Shown here piece after piece: positions 20,210 to 55,830 of a stretch of 64,000 bases of DNA; the stretch's first letter is position 1; each line of letters opens with the position of its first letter. Under the pieces are notes generated by a model. That model was not told where the DNA came from and did no database searches. It saw only the letters and a program-made list of their open reading frames with translations. This DNA comes from Azolla caroliniana. Its lineage: Eukaryota; Plantae; Polypodiophyta. The DNA is taken from assembly GCA_043228905.1 (NCBI GenBank), contig JBHGNT010000010.1:21762001-21826000 (forward strand), in the 5' to 3' direction. The position numbers and the translations under genes were made by a program.

Positions 20210-23200
20210 ATGGTGGTGGTGATCGCGTGTCGAGTACACCATCGCTCTTTCCGACTGTACTCCCAGGCGTCCAGAAATCATCATCACCTTTTTTCAGCTC
20301 AGATCTCCTCAGAATCGCTTCATGGACTCTCTAGAAGTAAGCATCTCTTCCCTTCCTATAAAAAAGTCTTCCATCGCGGCTACATCAGGAATTATCTTTT
20401 GGAAGAAGTAAAGGAAAGAAGAAGAAGGGAAGATTCTAAAGAGATTGTTGTTTTCTGGGACCTTACCACGTGTACTGTTCCACATGGGGTTGATCCTTAT
20501 CGAATCAGTCCTAATATAGCCATTTCGCTTCGAAAGAATGGATTCTCGGGGCCTTTGTCAATCCACGCCTATGGAAACACCAGATCTCTCAATGATCAAG
20601 AGTTTTTGCAAGCTCTCGTTTCAACTGGAGTAGATCTTCACCATATCCCTGGTGGTAAGACTATTCTTTCACTATGCTCTATGTATGTACATACAATCAA
20701 AAGAAATTGCATGAAATAAAACGTTATAGTGAGTGATAGAACACATACTGACAGATAAGATAAATGCCGTGCTATATTAACATATTTAGAAGCCTGAAAT
20801 GACAGATGAGATTATTTCCATGCTGTATTTAGCATATTTAGAAGTCCAAAATGACAGATGAGATTTAGTGGTCTTATACTGTGTCATATTATTGTATTTG
20901 GAGGGCTGAAATGACATATCATACCAAAGAATTTATATCCTTGCAAGATCTGCCACACTGAAATGTTAACATCTCAAAAGTCAGGAGACAAAATAAATTG
21001 CATCCCAATGAGATCTTATGCAATTAAATGTTATATTAACATATTCAAAAGAAACTCATCAAATAGCCTAAATTAGTTACATCCAAAATGACATGAGACC
21101 AGAAAACTTACATGCCAGTGAGATCTGTTACAACGAAATATTAACTTTTCTGAATGCCTGAAATGACCGATGAGAGACCCAATAAATTATATTCCAGTGA
21201 GAGACAGTGAAATGAAATGTTTTGTTAATGTCTTCAAATGGCCAAATTAATGGAGCATACTAAATTAACTTATGTTCTAGTAAGATTTGATAAAATGAAT
21301 CTTAAGTTCACATCTTGGAAGGGACAATTTCATCTATGCGATTGAATATATTACATCCCAGTTTGGAGATGATATAGTAACATCTTCAAAAGGCCAAAAT
21401 TGCTGAGTGAACCACAAAGTAATGGTACCCTAAATCTGTGTGCTGGTAAACATATTGAAAGGGTTCTAAACTAAAGAGTACGTATTGAATTTAATTATAT
21501 GTTCTTTAACTTGTTTGTATGCAGGCATGAAGAATTCAATCACTTACTGTCTTGTGGATTTGCTTTTATGGGTTAAGGAAAATTTACCACCAGCTCTTGT
21601 GCTGCTTATATCTGGTGATAAGAATTTCTCTGCTGTCATGCACAAGCTTCAGATGAGAGGTTATGATGTTCTCTGGGCTCATCCAGATGAGGAAGTTTCT
21701 TCTGATGTTCTCAGTCTTGTGGGTGAAGTTTGGGCTTGGGAGAATATTATGAGAGGCGTTGGAGTTGCAAGAAGATCACCCATGAGCAATATGCCACCCA
21801 GCAATGATCCATTGCAAGCATATCCTAAAGAAGATAACAAAAGAGATCTTGTTGAATTTGGTGCAAAAAAGAAACCACAAGGGGTTCCAAAGGTAGTTCT
21901 TAACAAGTTGTTGGATATTATAAGACTGAGGCCTAATGGATACACATTGGCAGCCTTTCGACGGCAATTGATTAGATCCAATATTGTACTTGATAAAGAA
22001 TTCTATGGTCACAAGGATTTACTGTCCTTCCTGCTTTCCATTCCTGAATTAAAGGCTAGTCTGGTCTGGACGTCTGATAGGACTAGAGCATATATGTTTA
22101 CTGAGGCGTCTGGTGAAGGTATCAACGTGAGAGGTGACAATGAGGTGATCCTACATGAAGAGAGGAAAGAATCGAAACCAATAGATCCTTCGTTAAAACA
22201 AATGGGAGATGCAGTAGAAGAGAAAAAGAATGCTATGGAGATGAATGTCTCTCAACAGAAAACATGCTTGTCGAAGAATGTGGAAACACATGAGAGTCCA
22301 ATAAGAGCTACAGTGAACAAAAGTAAATTTGCTTGTATCTGGGAAGTGAAAATTCTGGGAATGGCTAAGCGATTATTAAGCTTTACAAAACCAAAGGAGA
22401 ATACAGAATCTCAGGGGAAAACAGGGCTAAGTCATGATTCAAAATTTTGTAATAAAGCAATTGATAAATTGGGAAAACCAGAAACTGTGCTGGATGAATT
22501 AAAATTGAAGAATGATGGCAAGAATGTTAGAGGGGAATCCAAAATTGTTGAGATTAAGGGCAGCGAAAAAAGGCACGATCCTGAGAAGAGTCTGCCATTA
22601 AATATGGAGGAAGTCAATAAGTGTTTACTGGAAAATATCAAAGATGAAGAACACTTTAATGATTCTGACATGATTTGGAAGGAAATAAACCAAAGCAACG
22701 AGCTGTCTAAGGTGTTAACTCATTCAGATGGTGAAATTGATCAAGAATATCATCGTCCTAGTGAGGCAATAATATCAAAGTCTTCAGAAGATATGAAAGA
22801 GACGTTTGTTAAGAGGTCCAAAATTATCGAGATCAAGGGAGGAGGAAAAACACAGGGTCCTGAGAAGAGCCTGGTACTAAATCAGGAGGAAGGCAATATT
22901 CATTTACCAGAGAACTTCAGGGATGAAGAGCTCTTTAATGATGCTGGCACAAATCTGAAAGAAATAAACCAAAGTAAAAAGCTGTCTAAGGTTCTCACTC
23001 ATTCTGACAGCAAAAGAGATCAAGAATATAATCATCCTAGTGATGCAGTAAGACCAAAGTCTCCAGGAGAGACGAAACCTGCATCTTTTGAGAAGTCCAA
23101 AATGATTGATATTAAGGGAGGAGATAAAAGGGAGGCTCCTGAGAAGAGTCTGCCATTAAATATAGTGGAAGGCGATACTTGTTTACCAGAAAACATCAAA

Positions 23201-26200
23201 GATGAAGAGTTCTTTAATGATGCTGTCACACTTCTAAAAGACCAAAAGAGCAAGTCATCTAAGCTGCTCACTCATTCTGACAGTGAAAAAGATCAAGGAC
23301 GAGGTCATCCTATTGAGGCAATTATATCAAAGTCTTCAGAAGACATGAAACATCCATTGCATGAGAATAGAAAAGACCTTCCTTCCAAGGAAGAGTTGCA
23401 AAGTATAGGATTCACAGAAGAGATTTGGAAGATGTCTGTTATACATTTGGCAAGCGATAAGGGAAGACTTCAATTTACTAAAGATAATAGCATGTAAGTA
23501 ATTTTCATTTATACTTGAAAGATATTCTATTGAGATCATGTACTAACGCCCAAATTCTACTTTTAAGAGAGAGAATTGGCTAATTGATAGAGAATGATTA
23601 TGTTTCAAGAGTGAACACTATTAAGGGGCAATTTTAATTAGAAAATGGTTCATCTGAAAAAAATTGCAAAGATAGTAGAGAAGGTTTTATTAACATTTTC
23701 TAAAGCCTAAGCTGGCTGATGTGTGCTGAGGATTATGTATCAACAGTGGAGACTATCCTGAGGTCATTTAAGGGGAAAACCCTCCATGATTCAAAGCTAT
23801 ATGGGGAATGTGGGAGATGAAGAGATGCATTTCATTAAAATTTTCTTAAGTCCAAGTTGTCTTAAAGGGTTTACATGAAAAGAACGAAAATATCTGGATG
23901 AAGATGGGGACCTTCCAATTGTATTTAAAGAGGCAAGCGCTGTGACTGAACATTTGGATCCTGATGTATGCAAAGCATTGTGAATGATATACAAGATTTT
24001 TGTGAAAGAACTATGGTTTGCATCACTATATTGGCAACATCATTTGAATCTTGCTCGCAAACAATGATAGGGGATGATCAATGTTGACAGATAGTTCAGT
24101 CTTCTTGATCTTCATTGAATTTGGTTCTAATGTGCGTTGAGTTTAACTGACCCATGGGACGAACAAATCATTACAATTTAAAACAGTAGAACAAAAAGAA
24201 CATGTAGAATCTGAATAAAGGATTAAGCTAATTGACGAAATACTGTGATTCCAGGCTTGAAGTAGACGAGCAAAGAGAATGCAGTGTTGTCAGTGGGGTT
24301 TTTGTTCTTGTTGGGATTTCATAATAGTTAGTACAACTTTGTCTTATATGCAAGGCATTCCAAAGTGAAATGTTCTTCTGTTTCTGGTATATGAGGTAGC
24401 ATACGCCATGTATCCTCTTTTCCTGCTCAATATCAGTCAACCCCCAGTTTCTATTTTCAACATGTGTGACTATCCACATAAGTATGATTGTGTGTCTCGT
24501 TGTTCTGTGCATAGGTATGCAGTTGTAACATTGGGGGTTGGTGGCACTGGGTAAGTTTTCCAATATTGAGGATTAATGTGGCTGCAATAGTACTCAAAAG
24601 TAGATCGAGGTTGGGCTGTTCACATTTCCTATGGAGGGTTGCTGAGTAAACTAGAGCTGTTGCTGGCGCAACGAACACTATAGATTAACCCAACCCGGCT
24701 CTCCCTCCCATGCTACAACTCAATCAAGGTTCTAATTCAAAAGGCATCACAGTAGATTGTTAGGTCCATCTGCATCACCACCCTTGTTATTGACAAATTC
24801 ACCTGACACTAAGGGTGCTTTCCTGGCTTTGGAGACATTTCTATCTTGGATCAGGCCATGTTTGAAGATCTCTCGAAGGCAGAAGTTTGAGTTCATCCCA
24901 AGGTCTTGACTGTAAGCATTAGTTAAATATCTGGTACCTAAGTTAAATGGTGCAATCATACTAATCTAGTTGGAAACAACATTTTAAGACGTTATCGCTC
25001 AATCAGTGTCATTGACCATTTTGGCCTCTTAAAATGCCAGTGTCATGGACAACGAGATAATCTACAACATGCAGTCTTGCAAACCATTTGAGGGGATTGA
25101 TGAAGAAATTTGCCTTTCTTTTTTGCATATTAAGCATCCAATTTCCATGTTACCATTGGGAGTCGAATTTGGGGCATTGTCCTTATTCTCAATATGGTTT
25201 TAACACTCTTAAGGGCATAAAACTCCACTGGCCTTCTCTGGTTTCTTAAAGGTGGCAGCATATGAATTTCTTTTATAATTTCTCATTTCGTTCTGTAAGC
25301 TTGCCCACACGTCAGTTCTATATAGCAGAGTTTGTGCTGTGCATAAATGGAATATTATTTTGTTAATTTCCCATCTTTGGGTCGTACTCAAGTGGCACAT
25401 GTTCTCAAATTCATGCTATTAAGATATGTTTGCTTCCATTTTCCTAGTTAGACATGTTGGAGGGTGGCAGCTCCAGACCTGCACTTTCTTACATCTTTAT
25501 TATCTCTCTTCTACATTCTCTCTTTTCCTAGCTTCTTCTCTCTCTAGAATCTGCAATGCTTTAAATGCCTTCTCTCTCTTCTATTTTTTCCAAGATATTC
25601 CCCCTTATTCCTAGTTTATTGTACCTGTTTGGTAGTACAAGAGTCGCTTAACTACCAAACAACCATTTCACCCACGTTCCCCACTTGTGTATAAATAGGC
25701 TATACCAGCCTCTTTTGGAAGAACTTTATATTTGCTGCTACTTGCAAACAGGCTCTACTCTTTGGTTGTGTCTCTACTCTTTGCAATTATGCCTAACAGC
25801 TTTTCTCACAATACATCCTTTCCAAGTGTTGATTGTTTATGCCTATTCCAAGGTTTTTGAAACTTCTAATGACTTCAGTTGCCTCTTTATAATACAATAC
25901 TGGCAGCTGGCGTTTAGCATGACTTTGGTCTTAGCCATGTTGACTGATAGGTTGCAGTTTTCTCAGAAAGTATGTGCTTCATGCAAAACCTTTTGCAATC
26001 TCACCTTAGAAGATGCCAAAAGTACAATATCATTGCAGAAACCAAAGGCAATACTTTGAAATACATAATGTTTGTCTTTTTCTTTCTGTTCCCCCAAGAC
26101 GTGTTGGATGAACTTTTTTAGCTGATCAATACATAGAATGAATAGTGTAGGTGATAGATGGTATTTTTATTCACTCCCACAGTTCTTATGAACTCTCTAA

Positions 26201-28973: not shown

Positions 28974-29546
28974 CCCTTTCTTATTAAGGTCTAATACTAC
29001 AGGGAAAATTTGGTCAAGATTTTATTAGGGAGTAATATAACTGAAGTAGCCAAGTATCAAGAACATGAACTACAGAGACTTGCAAAACTTCTATATTCTT
29101 ACTTACATCCAAGGATTAAGAACTCTGGCAAGGAAGGCATATCAGAAATTAGACATACCAGCTCTTCAGGTAAAACAATTGAGAGGCAGGACAACACTTC
29201 AAAGACAAAGACTAGCAAAATAAATTCTGTTGAATCCATAAAGACTACTGCGAAAATTGATATGGCAATTTCAGCACTTGATGCATCTATAAAGTCACTA
29301 GTTGAATCAATTGTTTTGAAAGATTTGAGGGAGATGCTAGTATGCCGTCTGAAAGATTGCAAAAATGGAGTTCAACTTGGTTGTGTGAAGCCAGAATTCA
29401 AAAAGAAATATGGATATGATCTTAACAACAAAGTCTTAGGCCATAGCTCTCTTTCTTCACTTATCAACACATTAGATGGAGTTGTTATGTCCAAAGATAA
29501 TAATCCTATAATCAGGAAGTCACGGTCTGAGCCTAAAAAGCAATGA
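20210..29546 (+). CDS. NYN-domain + LOTUS/OST-HTH protein (MNU1/MNU2-, MARF1/limkain-b1-like), probably organelle-targeted. Exons 20210-20654, 21525-23493, 29003-29546 (985 aa)
   Basis: NYN: IVVFWDLTTCTVP...GFSGPLSIHAYGN...TGVDLHHIPG|GMKNS...WVKENLPPALVLLISGDKNFSAVMHKLQMRGYDVL. LOTUS-like segments NGYTLAAFRRQL...FYGHKDLLSFLLSIP and GVQLGCVKPEFKKKYGYDLNNKVLGHSSLSSLI. An OHA-like segment spans the exon 2/3 junction. Introns are phase 1 and phase 2; total 2958 nt = 986 codons. The R/S/H-rich N-terminus resembles a transit peptide. Confidence 0.88.
20740..21460. repeat. Degenerate minisatellite-like repeats in intron 1 of the NYN gene
   Basis: Recurring ctgaaatgacagatgaga / ccaaaatgac / ttaacatatt motifs at roughly 50-130 bp spacing. 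Confidence 0.6.
22538..23350 (+). repeat. Coding tandem repeat, 279 nt (93 aa) x3, in the NYN/LOTUS protein
   Basis: SK(I/M)(V/I)(E/D)IKG...PEKSL...EN(I/F)(K/R)DEE.FND...SK(V/L)LTHSD...DQ units start at 22538, 22817 and 23096. Confidence 0.93.
25200..26800 (-). mobile_element. Highly degraded LINE (RTE-X-like) fragments inside NYN intron 2 (~25200-25450 and ~26200-26800)
   Basis: Remnant IFHLCTAQTLLYRTDVWA resembles the LFNAMVTQILLYGVEV motif of the 27719-28790 element; the two fragments share agggcataaaactc. Confidence 0.5.
27691..28971 (-). mobile_element. 5'-truncated RTE-X/L2-like LINE 3' half (~28790 to 27719) with a (TTCTAG/TTCTAA)n tail, bracketed by (AG)14 at 27691-27718 and (AG)~31 at 28909-28971; inside NYN intron 2
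   Basis: Minus-strand translation WEVKLMLFNAMVTQILLYGVEV...EIEKVQKMFLRRQL...MLLEIG...KNMPNHRLP and a C-terminal CKVC...EDECHLLF..SAYSAI Cys/His motif; short-tandem-repeat tail at 27715-27750. Clade assignment is inferred. Confidence 0.78.
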
Positions 29547-46807: not shown

Positions 46808-47032
46808 CTGAAAAAATTGGAATCGATTGGAATTCCATTAGCAGATCTAGACTCCAGGGGCTTTTTCCCCAGATTAATTGATTGATTGGTTGGTTGATTG
46901 ATTGATTAGTGGAGGCTACCTACGAATCCATCCATTTCTTTAAGCAGGGCAGGGGAGTGGGATCAGATTAAGGAGGAGAAGGAAGAAGAAGAAGAAGAAG
47001 AAGAAGAAGGGATTTATTTGAGGATTTAGAAT

Positions 47033-47432
47033 ATGCAGCAGCAGCAGCAACGAGCGAGCGGGGGGGGGCCGGTGGTGGCGGTGGTGCAGAGCCTGACGCC
47101 CGAAGCGGCGCGGATCCTGAAGCAGGCGGTGGCGGAGGCGGCGAAGCGCGGCCACGCGCAGGCCACGCCTCTGCACGTGGCAGCCTGCCTGCTGCTCGCA
47201 CCCAACAGCCCTCTGCGAGCCGCATGCCTTCATGTCATCACTAACAACAACAACAACAATAATAATAATGGTAATGGTGGCCATGGCGATGGCGGTAATG
47301 GTGGTAGTATGGGCCCCGCCGCCCATCCATACAACAACAACAACTGCGATGAGAAGGCCAATGAGCGGGCCACGCGGATCGGGATCGGAAACATGGGCCC
47401 CTCCTCATCCTCATCGACCCATCATCATCCTC

Positions 47433-47474
<42 letters not shown>

Positions 47475-50400
47475 ACTGTGGCATGCCACGCTGCCGCGCA
47501 TTGGAGCTCTGTTTCAACATTGCTCTCGACCGGCTCAACCAGAGCCAGGCGGCTTCTTCAGCCACGCCTCTCCCTACTACTACTACTACTACTACTACTC
47601 CCTCCTCGCCTTTCCTTACCACCCACAGTAATAACAGCTATGCCCCCTCCTATTCCAATGCTCTGGTCGCTGCCTTGAAGCGCGCCCAAGCCCACCAGAG
47701 GCGAGGCTGCCCAGAGCAGCTGCAACAGCAGCAGGCGCAGGCCCCCCTTCTGGGAGTGAGAGTGGAGCTCCTGCAGCTCGTCGTCTCCATCCTGGACGAC
47801 CCCAGCGTGAGCCGCGTCATGCGCGAGGCCGGCTTCAGCAGCACGGCGGTCAAATTGCACCTCGAAGAAGAAATCATCATGGCCGCCGCTGTTAACCATA
47901 ACCATACCACTACCACCACCAATACTACTACTACTACTACTACTATTACTACTACTACTACTAATAATAATAATACCACCAATATAATGAACTCTGTCAA
48001 TCCCCCTCTTCATCATAATCAACAGCAATTGATGATGATGATGAACCATTGCAACCCTAGTAATATTATTGCTTACAATTACCAGAATGGCAAATATGCC
48101 TGCAAAGAGTATATGAACCCTGCTGTTACCACCACCACCACCATTGCCGCTGGTTCAGCACACCATATTCACCCTGTACTTAATAACAACGGTCATAATG
48201 ATGCGCTTCTCAACAATCTTGAGCACCTCCACAAGTTTGCTCATCCTCATCCTTCTCCACCTCCTCCTCCTTCTCCTCTTCATCATCATCATCAACATCA
48301 TCGTCAATATGGAGATAATTATTCACCTGCAAGCCAATATATGACGATCAGTAGTAGTATCAATCCACTGCCCAACCATAACCATAGCGATAGCCATATT
48401 AGTCATAATCCAGCCATGGGTCAGATCATTAATCAGCGTCATGAACCAGTGTCAAGAATAAAGCATCATGGTGCCTCCAGCTGTTTAACACCTTTGAGGT
48501 AAATAAGAATAATACTACAGTTATTCATACATAATTCCTTTCAATGTTAACGCAAGACATTATAATGTAAAACTAGTCTCAATTAGCGTATCTCATCTCA
48601 CGGCACTATATTCCTTCTCAATCCAACAAATTCAATATAAACTTCATCTGAATATAATATGTGTTTTTCTAAAAACCGATTTAGATTGAGAAAATATGAG
48701 TTCGTCATAACCATAATTGCACATGGGAAAACATGAATGATGTAATTGGGCATGCCTTCATGGAAACATGCTTCCTCTGGCACATTAGCCACCCTGCTCA
48801 ATATAATGTTCGGCCAGGGACACAAGGGCAATTTTGGGCTGACCATTGATCTCTCATGGGAATTCAATTAGCTCTCCCAGTTTGGGCTCACATGAAAGAG
48901 TAGGGTATACTCTGGTATTATATATTCAGGCTTTTTTTGTGTGTGTCAGAAAAAAATAACTTTGTAAAATCCATGGACTCATTCTCGTTAAAAATGATCA
49001 TTGATGCATGCATGGGATGGCTGTTTCCCTCCTTATTCCATTTAAGGTTGCCCTTAAATCATCACATCCTTAGATCAATGAATAATATAGTTGGGTTGAG
49101 CTCTGTATATGCATCTGCACTGAAATTCTGACCCGAAATTTGAAAAACGAATATTCATGTAGGTATGAAGGAAGACACAATTCGGAGTCGCTAACATTAT
49201 CGCTACAGAGGCCTCCATCACCCGAACAAATTACAGTGCATCCAGAATCGAGCATCAGTTATATGCCTCCTGAATTAGAGCTGGAGACCAATAATATCGA
49301 TTCACGACAATTCTCGGACACATCATGTTGTTCGGATTGCACGATGAAGTACGAGAAAGAGGCTCACTTAATGATGTTATGCGAAGAAGAGCGATTCTAC
49401 AATGGGCATGAGTCAAATTCACCCTTATCCTGTTCTTCTTCAGTGGAACCCCCGACAAATTGCACTACAATTGTAAAAACAAGCCCTCCATCTGATGTTT
49501 TTCAGCTGCCTTCATGGCTTCAAAAAGCTCTTTCGGGTGTGGGTGGTGAAAACAGAGTCATTTCAGCTTCAACACCTAGTGCTGCTCAGGTAACTATTTC
49601 AAATTGCCTTTTATGATTGATTGTAAGGAAATGGAGTCTATCTTAAGGCCTCTCTAAGGATACATACTACTGTTATATATCTCGTGTTTTTTGTCATCCA
49701 AATTGAATTTTTTTGACTCATAATAGGGAGCTAATTTTTTAATCTTTGTACTGTAATGTAAACTAGGCCACCAGAGAGAACAAGATAGTATCCCAGAGAT
49801 TGAAAGAGCTACAGAACAAGTGGAGTCAAGCGTGCAAGAGTCTTAATCACAATGGTGCCCATTCGAACAATGACAACTATGTTATCCCCAATCTAAATCT
49901 GTCACTAGATTTACAACTGCAATCATCCTCTAGTTCTTGCACCCAAGCCTCTTCCATAAATCCGCCTCCTGAGCCTATATTAAATGTTCAGAAGAAATCA
50001 AGGTTGAATATATCTGAAAATCCTGCTCGCCATCAGAAAAATGGAAGTATGGATGACGATGATGCTCTCATGAGACTTTGCAAAGGGCTTCACAAGAGAG
50101 TGAGCTGGCAACCACGTGTCATCTCCACATTGGCCCATACCGTGGCACTATGCCGATCAGGTCTGGGAGTTAAGAGAGGCCTGAAAGGTTCGACCAGTTC
50201 ATCATGGTTACTCTTCTTGGGTGAGGATAGGCATGGCAAGAGAGAGATGGCAGAGGCATTGGCAGAGCTAGTATTTGGAGAAGGAAAGAAACCCATCTAC
50301 TTACAGTTCAATAAACCCACACTAATTTCATCATCATCAGAACTAATTTTTAAGAATGCTTTGGGTCTTTCCGCCACTAGAGGTAAGATGCCAATGGATA

Positions 50401-50975
50401 GCATGGTAGAAGCTTTGAGGGCAAATCCGTCTTCAGTTGTTTTGTTTGAAGATTTGGATTGGGCGGATTCAATGTCTCGAAACGCGCTATTGAAGGCCAT
50501 GGAGAAAGGAAGAATGGTGGACACTAATGGAAGAGATGTGAGCTTCAACAATGCCATTGTTATCATGACTAGTAGCTACCCTGGGACTAATACTAATTCT
50601 CAAGTTGGAACAAAGTTACATCATGTTAAAGTAGAAGAACCACCTCCATATTGCCAACAGGAGTCTTTAACTAATATGCACAATAAGAGAAAGGGAGGAT
50701 TATCCGATGACCTTAGATATGGCTCAACCACTAAGAGATCTTGCCTTAATGCTAGCGTATGTCTTGATTTGAATATGTCGGCCGAAGAGAATATTACCAA
50801 TGATGTCCCTGTAACTGACCATCACTGCATTACTTCCACCAATGGAGTCATCAAATCGCAATTCATCATTCCTGAAGATGAATCGGTGCTACGAGCATTT
50901 GCAAATAAACAACATTTGCAAGGCTTCTGTGACCTTGCTGATGCTGTTCTTGTCTTCGACCCACCTCCTGTTTAA
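47033..50975 (+). CDS. SMXL: SMAX1-LIKE (SMXL/D53 family, ClpB-related) transcriptional co-repressor, atypical. Exons 47033-48498, 49163-49589, 49767-50975 (1033 aa)
   Basis: Double Clp-N: [97 protein letters not shown] domain: [30 protein letters not shown]2: [52 protein letters not shown] motif LDLNM. Introns are phase 2 and phase 0; total 3102 nt = 1034 codons. Confidence 0.93.
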
Positions 50976-53283: not shown

Positions 53284-55830
53284 TCACAGCCTCACAATCC
53301 TTTCAGCATCCTCGAGGCTTGCAGTTGCATACATGTTCACCATACGAGAATAAGGTCTACCATCAGCTCTATCTAGTTCTATTGCCTTCTCAAAAGCCCA
53401 TCTTCCAATATGCACATTACCCCATTTTTTACATGCACCCAAGAGCGTGCACCATAGTGGATGATAAGACGGCAGTTCCCTCATTACTTCTATAGCCTTG
53501 TCGAAACGTCCTGTCCGGCTGAACAGACCAACCATGCAAGTGTAGTGTTGTATTTGAGGAGTGACACCATATCCTCGTCTCATATTTTCAAAATACATTT
53601 CGCCCTCGTTCACAAGGCCAGAATGACTACACGCACTAAGAATACAAAGAAATGTTACTGCATCTGGAGAGATACCCTCACTTTGCATTTGTTCAAAACA
53701 ATCTAGAGCTTCTTCAACGTGCCCCCTATGAAAATACCCTTCAATGAGTGCAGACCAAGAGACTACATCCCGAAAAGGAAGCTCATCAAGAACTTGTTGT
53801 GCTTTATCCAGCACACCACATTTCACATACATATGCACCAATGCATTGCCGAGCGTAGAATGTTTCTCCAGCATCCCCTTGTTAACAATGAATTCATGAA
53901 GTTGTTTCCCAATATCAAGTACTCCTCTGGAGCTACATGCTTTAAGGATGCAAAAGAAAGTTATTCTATTTGGAGAAAAACCATCACTTTGCAGCCTGAA
54001 AAACGAGTTTAATGCATCTTCTGCTTGACCCCATTGAGAATATCCTGCAATAAGTGCATTCCAAGAAACCACATCTCGGATGGGAATTTTGTCGAAAACC
54101 TCCTGTGCCTTTTGCAATGCACCACACTTACCATACATATCGACCAAGGCATTTCCAATGACCATATGCTTTTCAAGAAGCCCTTTAGCGATGATTTCAT
54201 CGTGTATTCGTTTGCCCCTACCAAGTGCTCCTGTGCTTCCACATGCCTTCAAAATACAAGTCAATGTAGTCTCACTCGGGAAAACACTTTGACTGATCAT
54301 CTGGTCAAAACAGCTCAATGCATCTCCTCCCTTACTCTGCTTGTTATATCCTACCATCAGTGCATTCCATGATACTACGTCATGAGCACAAAGGCTGTCG
54401 AGAACTTTTTGTGCTTTTTCTAGCTCGCCACATTTGGCATACATATCCAACAATGCGGTGCCAAGACGAGCATCTTTATCCAACAATCCTTCATTCATTA
54501 TGTCACGGTGTATTTTTTCACCTTCTGCAATGGCTTCTATAGAGCCGCATGCCTTTAGTATGCATACAAATGTGATTATGCTTGGTGAGAGGCCCTCCTT
54601 TTGCATTCGACGAAAACAATTTAAAGCCTCCGATCCCTGCCCATCTTCAGCATACCCTGCAATCAGTGCATTCCAAGATACCACATCCCGAAAAGGAAGG
54701 ACATCAAGCACTTGTGCTGCTTCTGTGATAGCACCACATTTTACATACATGTCAATAAGAGCATTTCCAAGCACAACACGTTGCCCTAGCAACCCTTTCC
54801 TGACAATCTCATCATGAATTCGTCTACCATTTTCAGCACTATGAGAATTTCTACAGGATTTCAAGATGCAAGTGAAGGTGACAGTATTTGGGGAAAAGCC
54901 ATCATCACTTTGCATCTTTTGAAAACAATGCAATGCATCGTCACACTTCCCTTGGTGGGCATAACCCGCAATTAACGCATTCCAAGAAGCTACACACCGC
55001 ATAGGAAGGTCCTCAAAGGCCTCTCGAGCTTTCCCTTGCTGACCACACTTAGCATACATATCCACCAATGCTGTACTAAGAACAGTGTCATTCCTCAACA
55101 AACCCTTGTAAAGAATCTCACTGTGAATTTGACAACCTTTATGAAATGCTCCCATGTTGCCGCAGGCCTTCAAAATGAAGGTGAATGTGATGGAATCCGG
55201 GGAGATACCCTCATTTTGCATTCGTTCAAAACAACTTAAAGCCTCTGAACCCATCTCTTTTTGGGCATATCCTCCAATGAGAGAAGACCACGAGACTACA
55301 TCCCGGATAGGAAGCTCATCAAACACTGTTTGTGCTTTGTCCAGTGCACCACATCTGACATACATATCAACCAAGGCATTGCCAAGCACAACATGTTTTT
55401 GGTGAAGAAAGCCCTTTGTAACAATCTCATGGTGGATTTGTTTACCTTTTGCCAATGCTCTTATGTGACCACATGCCTTCAATACACAAACGAACGTGAC
55501 CTCATCTGGAAGAATACCGTGGTTCAGCATCTTCTCGAAACATCTTAATGCTTCCTCCCCTTGCTCATCTTGAGAATATCCTGCAATGAGTGCATTCCAA
55601 GCGATGCCATCTTGAACGGGAAGCTCTTCAAACACTTGGCACGCTTTGTCCAGCTTACCACATTTTGCATACATACTCACTAGTGTGCTTCCAATATAAG
55701 GATGCTTTTCAAGCAACTTTTTCCTTAGAATGTCCGCATGTAACCTAATTCCTGTCTCCAGATCCTTCTTCTTAGCACAAGTTTTTAGTAAGGAAACACA
55801 GGATACACACTCCGCTTGGTAATTTGCCAT
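53284..55830 (-). CDS. PLS-class pentatricopeptide repeat protein, E-subgroup (23 PPR motifs + E1 + partial E2, no DYW); putative organellar RNA-editing specificity factor; intronless
   Basis: Seven regular L-S-P triplets (GNALVDMY.KCG / VVSWNALIAGY / TF.CILKAC), then L2 (TFLCILSACSHSGLVNEG), S2 (HYTCMVGLFSRTG), E1 (WCTLLGACKKWGNV) and a truncated E2. Confidence 0.95.
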   Translation of the reverse strand: MANYQAECVSCVSLLKTCAKKKDLETGIRLHADILRKKLLEKHPYIGSTLVSMYAKCGKLDKACQVFEELPVQDGIAWNALIAGYSQDEQGEEALRCFEKMLNHGILPDEVTFVCVLKACGHIRALAKGKQIHHEIVTKGFLHQKHVVLGNALVDMYVRCGALDKAQTVFDELPIRDVVSWSSLIGGYAQKEMGSEALSCFERMQNEGISPDSITFTFILKACGNMGAFHKGCQIHSEILYKGLLRNDTVLSTALVDMYAKCGQQGKAREAFEDLPMRCVASWNALIAGYAHQGKCDDALHCFQKMQSDDGFSPNTVTFTCILKSCRNSHSAENGRRIHDEIVRKGLLGQRVVLGNALIDMYVKCGAITEAAQVLDVLPFRDVVSWNALIAGYAEDGQGSEALNCFRRMQKEGLSPSIITFVCILKACGSIEAIAEGEKIHRDIMNEGLLDKDARLGTALLDMYAKCGELEKAQKVLDSLCAHDVVSWNALMVGYNKQSKGGDALSCFDQMISQSVFPSETTLTCILKACGSTGALGRGKRIHDEIIAKGLLEKHMVIGNALVDMYGKCGALQKAQEVFDKIPIRDVVSWNALIAGYSQWGQAEDALNSFFRLQSDGFSPNRITFFCILKACSSRGVLDIGKQLHEFIVNKGMLEKHSTLGNALVHMYVKCGVLDKAQQVLDELPFRDVVSWSALIEGYFHRGHVEEALDCFEQMQSEGISPDAVTFLCILSACSHSGLVNEGEMYFENMRRGYGVTPQIQHYTCMVGLFSRTGRFDKAIEVMRELPSYHPLWCTLLGACKKWGNVHIGRWAFEKAIELDRADGRPYSRMVNMYATASLEDAERIVRL

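Follow-up and report, generated by a model that had tools for sequence, protein, structure and literature searches.

A putative fern-type SMXL gene that carries a low-complexity stretch in place of its D1 domain

SMXL proteins are the degraded repressors that stand at the end of karrikin/KL (KAI2 ligand) and strigolactone signalling, and it is under active study which domains of these proteins receptor choice, docking on MAX2 and output depend on. A locus in a 64,000-nucleotide stretch of Azolla caroliniana contig JBHGNT010000010.1 (the window, here and below) poses this question in an unusual form, since a preliminary description of the DNA had presented it as an SMXL gene in which the entire D1 domain is replaced by a prion-like, low-complexity region built from microsatellites. 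Is D1 truly absent from this gene, what stands in its place, and is the gene real? By reading the sequence together with the list of open reading frames (ORFs), we found that the SMXL gene consists of three exons on the + strand (47033-50975), with a coding sequence of 3102 nt, that is, 1033 codons and a stop. Its parts are as follows.

47033-47872, +, exon 1, part 1: double Clp-N (N) domain, 280 codons, GC content 0.62, GC content at third codon positions (GC3) 0.73
47873-48498, +, exon 1, part 2: low-complexity stretch, 208 codons (281-488), GC3 0.36
48499-49162, +, intron 1: GT...AG, phase 2, 664 nt, with the 3' end ...TGTAG/G at 49162
49163-49589, +, exon 2: M domain, with SLTLSL, CCSDC...YEKEA and LPSWLQ in the translation
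49590-49766, +, intron 2: GT...AG, phase 0, 177 nt, colinear in the genomic relatives L001, L003 and L004 (described below)
49767-50975, +, exon 3, ending in TAA: end of M, D2a (AAA_2) with a P-loop-like GEDRHGKR, RGKM at the RGKT position, and the EAR motif LDLNM

The product thus reads, in order, N domain, 208-residue low-complexity stretch, M, D2a and EAR. The N domain closes with [12 protein letters not shown] at 47872, and exon 1 runs on to a 3' end of AG/GTAAAT at 48498/48499, in phase 2. All splice junctions are canonical and preserve the frame, and there is no stop or frameshift in the 1033 codons. At the matching codon, the contig L004 has an intron-1 acceptor (...CAG/GTATGA), and both intron-2 sites are also kept there. 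The domain limits, the phase-2 intron, the M exon with CCSDC and LPSWLQ, and the length were all as the preliminary description had given them.

D1 is absent from the gene. Exons 1, 2 and 3 were searched one at a time, and not as the spliced 1033-residue protein. The Pfam profile of D1 (PF23569, NBD_SMAX1) had no match in exon 1 at E<=1; as a control, it matched 5 of 5 homologues (E from 3.8e-10 to 3.4e-81), and it is present in every exon-1 match listed except one truncated fragment. When 42 homologues longer than 700 residues were compared with the window by tblastn, only N (47057-47233 and 47489-47887) and D2 (50067-50879) were matched. A hidden Markov model (HMM) of D1, built from 115 homologues and run with hmmsearch --max (filters off) on every stop-free piece of at least 20 residues, found no D1 anywhere in the 64 kb when all six frames were read; its best value, E=1.7, fell at unrelated places, and neither exon 1 nor intron 1 was matched. 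Intron 1, moreover, has 12, 19 and 13 stops in its three + frames. In the N-domain alignment, the NP.V.VG, GDL.W and W.LQP motifs of the homologues have no counterpart after the N domain of the window gene. As a further control, 57 of 60 plant SMXL loci from metagenomes carry D1 in the same exon as the N domain, 140-260 nt past N. The earlier claims that exon 1 holds no D1 and that intron 1 cannot supply one are, therefore, borne out, and the profile match of the stretch to D1 that would have spoken to the contrary was looked for and not found.

For comparison with canonical proteins we used P0123 (1064 residues) and P0271 (1056 residues), which come from ERR2020652 and SRR4210093 and are taken to be of fern origin from their truncated C-terminus. 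These transcript-derived proteins were the next-best matches after the close relatives of the gene, and have N, a strong D1, M and D2. Alignment of exon 1 by blastp with P0123, P0271 and the Marchantia, Ginkgo and Diphasiastrum proteins gave only noise beyond the N domain. Exon 2 aligned with residues 448-546 of P0271 (blastp, E=2.4e-10); its start falls on residue 448, just past the end of D1 in that protein, so that the 208 residues of the window gene fill the slot of linker plus D1, which takes up 282 residues in P0271.

As described previously, the stretch of about 208 residues (codons 281-488) follows directly upon the Clp-N domain and contains poly-residue runs: T5/T7/T5, N4, M4, T5, P5 and H4. 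Its composition is dominated by N (14%), H (12.5%), T (12.5%), P (9%) and S (8%), with 6% charged and 21% hydrophobic residues, compared with 20-22% and 36% in D1 of P0123 and P0271. Tandem Repeats Finder detected the following arrays.

47905-47963: imperfect triplet array
48030-48044: imperfect triplet array
48128-48143: imperfect triplet array
48240-48306: imperfect triplet array

Perfect triplet runs of at least 4 units cover 110 of the 626 nt (18%), and all arrays about 25-29%. Since repeats cover only 18-29% of the stretch, most of it is unique sequence, and the view that it is largely encoded by microsatellites was too strong. The label prion-like is likewise loose and generous, for Q and N together make up 18% of the stretch and at most 30% of any 60-residue window. 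Its reading frame is open beyond chance: there are 0 stops in 208 codons, shuffled versions average 10, and 1 of 20000 shuffles was stop-free (p ~5e-5), while the other two + frames of the stretch have 12 and 24 stops. We found no resemblance to it among 5.8 billion proteins, searched at lengths of 115-366 amino acids. AlphaFold2, a prediction that the preliminary description had proposed, did not fold the stretch with confidence; residues 289-489 had a predicted local distance difference test (pLDDT) of 26-42, although other rows of the alignment carry D1. Such low values are consistent with disorder of the stretch, as weak evidence for it.

The core of the N domain that precedes the stretch is conserved. 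Exon 1, used as a query, retrieved over 1000 SMXL/SMAX1-like proteins of plants (best E=5e-44), with 54-63% identity to their N domains; the matches are confined to the N domain and amount to 26-57% of the query. Pfam Clp_N was only weak on exon 1 (E=0.029), but it is equally weak in true SMXLs. In the alignment, the domain agrees block for block with the homologues up to [16 protein letters not shown], its core residues being invariant with functional SMXLs. AlphaFold2 gave its helices a pLDDT of 70-86 and the loop inserts less than 50. The inter-helix loops (47240-47480 and 47574-47599) are enlarged by low-complexity inserts, and the repeats inside the domain are these.

codons ~70-100, +: poly-N/G insert in the N domain
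47433-47474, +: perfect (TGGGCA)7, encoding (GM)7
47574-47599, +: (CTA)8.7, encoding poly-T

M, D2 and EAR had been called conserved, and this holds for M, D2a and EAR; D2b, however, is absent, which had been overlooked. Exon 3 matched Pfam AAA_2 (PF07724) with E=2.7e-15. GEDRHGKR aligns with GxDxxGK(R/K) of all relatives, so the degenerate P-loop is kept, and the EAR motif LDLNM sits in an invariant L-D-L-N column block. At the RGKT position there is RGKM in the window gene, L003 and P0271, RGKL in P0123, SAKM in L004, and RGKT in Marchantia, Diphasiastrum and Ginkgo. The protein stops directly after ...VFDPPPV. In the alignment of the D2 region, the window gene, L003, L004, P0123 and P0271 share the end point ...VF(D/R/A)..., before D2b, and the proteins of Marchantia, Diphasiastrum, Ginkgo and Canna run some 110-120 residues further (D2b). 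Loss of D2b with an FRGKT-type motif retained is a published hallmark of monilophyte SMXLs (PMC6728956, PMC9133912).

We then asked what the relatives of the gene reveal about its age and constraint. Using phmmer with exon 3 and a word search, we found four close genomic contigs (L001-L004), all from metagenome assemblies. L001 and L003, from the European Nucleotide Archive, are ~90% identical to the window gene in DNA and 92-96% in protein; L002 and L004, from the Joint Genome Institute (JGI), are ~60% identical in protein. For single exons, the identity of exon 3 is 92-96% in P0307 and P0121 and 61% in P0308, and the amino-acid identity of exon 2 is 91% in L003 and 50-53% in L004. Exons 2 and 3 are intact, colinear and stop-free in L001, L003 and L004. 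The ratio of nonsynonymous to synonymous substitution rates (dN/dS, Nei-Gojobori) is 0.19-0.30 for exon 3 in 5 of 5 comparisons and ~0.2 (0.20-0.21) for exon 2 in whole-exon comparisons, with dS among the relatives compared ranging from 0.1 to 1.8 (1.3-1.8 at the upper end). Purifying selection thus acts on M-D2, and the lineage is an old one, dS between members exceeding 1. A dN/dS near 1, which the preliminary description had associated with a pseudogene, is far from the ~0.2 measured in M-D2; this value and the unbroken frame of 1033 codons agree with its description of the gene as intact.

In a maximum-likelihood tree of the D2 region, the window gene, L001, L003 and L004 form a group with support of 100/100 on a stem of 1.11 substitutions per site. 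This group is nested in a 100/100 clade with P0123 and P0271, and it stands apart from the liverwort, Sphagnum, lycophyte, gymnosperm and angiosperm rows. From this placement we infer that the gene is a fast-evolving offshoot of a fern-type SMXL clade. The suggestion of a lineage-specific SMXL class is matched by the distinct sub-clade, with its full support and long stem, in the D2-region tree.

Searches for a full-length counterpart gave the following. An unrestricted phmmer search with exon 3 found no full-length orthologue, and neither did the word search, which was limited by protein length and could miss one. In the exon 1 search, no match exceeded 63% identity. When metagenomes were scanned for the conserved N domain, 60 plant loci were retrieved; identity nowhere exceeded 77%, and the samples of L002 and L004 contributed no locus. 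P0264, which is exactly 1033 residues long, and four other long matches without N or D1 proved to be bacterial ClpB-like proteins and were discarded.

We consider it fairly probable that the locus is a real, protein-coding and divergent fern-type SMXL paralogue with the order N, disordered low-complexity linker, M, D2a and EAR, in which D2b is absent and D1 has additionally been lost. D1 would have disappeared through deletion or complete decay, and its place would now be taken by a linker that is polar, nearly without charge and prone to repeats. Several observations weigh against this. The contigs of the relatives stop short of exon 1 (L003 opens only 2 nt upstream of exon 2, and L004 includes 255 nt of intron sequence), so that the lack of D1 is on record from a single assembly. 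Neither protein collection searched contained a transcript-derived protein of the clade formed by the window gene and L001-L004. GC3 falls from 0.73 to 0.36 exactly at the junction of the N domain and the low-complexity stretch, and stays at 0.36-0.40 on through exons 2 and 3, whereas in the canonical transcripts L065 and L066 it changes only from ~0.55 to ~0.42, a mild 5' rise. Possible sources of the step are a GC island at the 5' end, gene conversion with a bias, a misjoin and a chimeric origin. Finally, domain-swap and yeast data implicate D1-M in contact with the receptor and in the response to the hormone (PMC9133912, PMC13233607), and weakened coupling or altered specificity or kinetics is, therefore, plausible for a protein without D1. 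Separately, we considered whether two canonical copies had recently converted the GC-rich N part, and rejected this, as nucleotide identity to them is only 72-73%.

Could the gene model be wrong? The N ORF and the M-D2 exons might belong to separate transcripts, or the stretch might be partly spliced out, in which case the cell would make M-D2 without N, a fragment with N alone, or N-M-D2 with a much shorter linker. This would fit a clade without a transcript-derived protein in the collections searched, the sharp change of composition at 47873 and relatives whose contigs cover exons 2 and 3 only. However, the N ORF stays open for 208 more codons, exactly to the AG/GTAAAT donor, whose phase suits the conserved acceptor, and exon 2 begins where canonical proteins resume after D1. 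N and the following domain lie in one exon in 57 of the 60 plant SMXL loci, and D1 would be missing under any splicing, as there is nothing D1-like in the 64 kb. We, thus, regard a wrong model as rather unlikely. Lower still we would place a decaying copy, in which repeat expansion destroyed D1 and the gene, or exon 1 at any rate, has recently become a pseudogene. A core domain has been lost, the branch is long and low-complexity inserts are unusually many, the N domain included; but 1033 codons without a stop or frameshift, an N-domain core invariant with functional SMXLs, the open frame of the stretch (p ~5e-5) and dN/dS of ~0.2 in M/D2 against three relatives, over dS of 0.1 to 1.8, are hard to reconcile with decay.

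The junction lies at an ACT/ACC triplet run (47905-47963) and coincides with the GC3 step from 0.73 to 0.36, and exon 1 is seen in one assembly only, as might result if a collapse or misjoin at a microsatellite-rich region had removed D1 or fused two SMXL copies. The frame, however, is kept throughout the stretch and on into exon 2. The ~540 nt of D1 are unique sequence, which is not what the collapse of a repeat array removes, and about 70-80% of the stretch is itself unique, non-repeat sequence with no homologue elsewhere. M-D2 is, moreover, far from the canonical copies (40% identity, long branch), and a locus so diverged is not a recent mix of two ordinary copies. Among the alternatives, we give an assembly artefact the least credence, marginally below a decaying copy.

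If the locus is indeed a real SMXL paralogue, what might its product do? For this gene, expression, translation of the stretch, repressor activity and coupling to MAX2/KAI2 are deduced from sequence features. The conserved EAR motif, the N domain and the selection on M-D2 suggest that an EAR/TOPLESS-type function as a transcriptional co-repressor is most likely retained. By analogy with published work on the N and D2 domains of SMAX1 (PMC12639087), docking on KAI2-MAX2 via N and D2a is most likely still possible, and the low-complexity stretch would bridge the domains as a flexible tether. In that work, cryo-electron microscopy and pull-downs showed that SMAX1 contacts SCF-MAX2/HTL7 via N and D2, with D1 and M not visible, and an N-linker-D2 construct of SMAX1 sufficed for stable MAX2-HTL7 binding with GR24 (PMC12639087). 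Loss of D1 would, by this analogy, shift receptor preference or degradation kinetics and not abolish coupling. The proposal that the protein is receptor-uncoupled is, therefore, doubtful, given that N and D2 of SMAX1 are enough for binding (PMC12639087) and that the gene keeps N, D2a and an RGKM identical to that of P0271. The proposal that it is condensate-driven is pure speculation.

The nearest described group is the monilophyte 'SMXLJ' (Walker et al. 2019, PMC6728956), for which P0123 and P0271 stand here. Their double Clp-N domain is 59-76% identical to that of the window gene, and they have in common with it the M motifs, D2a, RGK(M/L), the EAR motif LDLNM, the end without D2b and membership of one 100/100 clade. 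D1, missing from the window gene, is strong in P0123 (5.9e-56) and in P0271, and the D2 of the window gene is only 37-42% identical to theirs and sits on a long stem branch. Ferns have been reported to have one SMXL clade (PMC6728956), with a single copy in Ceratopteris (bioRxiv 10.64898/2026.04.22.720085), and we found no description of a second, D1-less fern SMXL lineage in the accessible literature.

Loss of D1 nevertheless has precedents. The bryopsid moss clade 'SMXLC' is said to lack D1 (review PMC9133912, citing Walker 2019), but according to Guillory et al. the domain organization of all four SMXLs in Physcomitrium is canonical (bioRxiv 10.1101/2023.04.11.536386), which leaves the claim for moss unsettled. 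As described in the review, SMXLC is a natural D1-less lineage of non-seed plants that arose after a lineage-specific duplication, and the window gene is likewise D1-less. The window gene, however, comes from another plant group, and in the tree it groups with the D2b-less clade and not with Sphagnum, the only moss row; this and its fern-type C-terminus argue for a loss of D1 independent of that in SMXLC. A further D1-less SMXL was found among plant contigs from three JGI metagenome samples (L062, L063 and L064), which resembles the window gene in having N and D2 without a detectable D1; D1 is present in the remaining 57 of the 60 SMXL loci of that scan. In L062 it is arranged as follows.

L062, 9704-13075: D1-less SMXL with N, ~85 ordinary residues, GGLGLTLHS, M exon carrying CCEEC...LPFWLQ, and D2 exon that includes the EAR motif

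Unlike the window gene, L062 has a non-repetitive link of ~85 residues and a full D2b; its D2 is only ~25-29% identical, and it is unrelated to the clade of the window gene. D1 loss, thus, seems to recur independently. Two annotated SMAX1-like proteins, of Salvia splendens (XP_042063592.1, P0201) and Linum grandiflorum (CAN1228671.1, P0184), also have N and D2 with no detectable D1; these models may be exon-skipping annotation errors or further natural losses.

Two other comparisons are instructive. The engineered SMAX1-ND2 (PMC12639087), which stays bound to MAX2-HTL7 in vitro with GR24, resembles the window gene in that a flexible, disordered tether and no D1 lies between N and D2; the window gene, however, is natural, keeps M, lacks D2b and has RGKM instead of RGKT. 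Angiosperm SMXL3 and SMXL9 have also lost a whole part (D2b) and are shorter, specialized repressors (PMC6728956, PMC9133912). They have D1 and lack RGKT, whereas the window gene lacks D1 and has an RGKT-like motif. What appears to be new here is a fern-type lineage without both D1 and D2b; the loss of D1 itself has precedents. This, together with a predicted function and a presumed expression, limits the value of the locus. If the interpretation as a real D1-less SMXL is right, the gene would provide a natural test of the recent structural claim by which SCF-MAX2 and the receptor are contacted through N and D2, and a second, fast-evolving SMXL lineage in ferns, where the function of the pathway is almost unexplored.

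A further-reaching version is possible, though we put it forward only tentatively: an old, fern-specific second SMXL clade may have lost D1 at its origin, its members being 'minimal' repressors with N, a disordered tether, M, D2a and EAR, and neither D1 nor D2b. The long stem would then reflect neofunctionalization, for example a changed receptor choice or changed degradation kinetics in KAI2/MAX2 signalling, and the histidine- and asparagine-rich tether would possibly promote nuclear condensates. Such a clade would be a natural counterpart of the engineered N plus D2 protein and would contradict the view that ferns have one type of SMXL.

Around the gene we noted a few other features. Just 5' of the start codon lies an (AGA)10.7 microsatellite (46977-47009), and a run of G9 (47062-47070) occurs in the first 40 nt of the coding sequence; both are possible 5' regulatory or slippage-prone elements. 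Other genes and ORFs in the window are as follows.

53284-55830, -: intronless gene for an 848-residue PLS-class pentatricopeptide-repeat protein, 2.3 kb downstream of the SMXL gene and convergent with it (Pfam PPR_2, E=6.5e-122)
21485-23497, +: ORF with NYN and OST-HTH/LOTUS matches
29010-29546, +: ORF with a second LOTUS match

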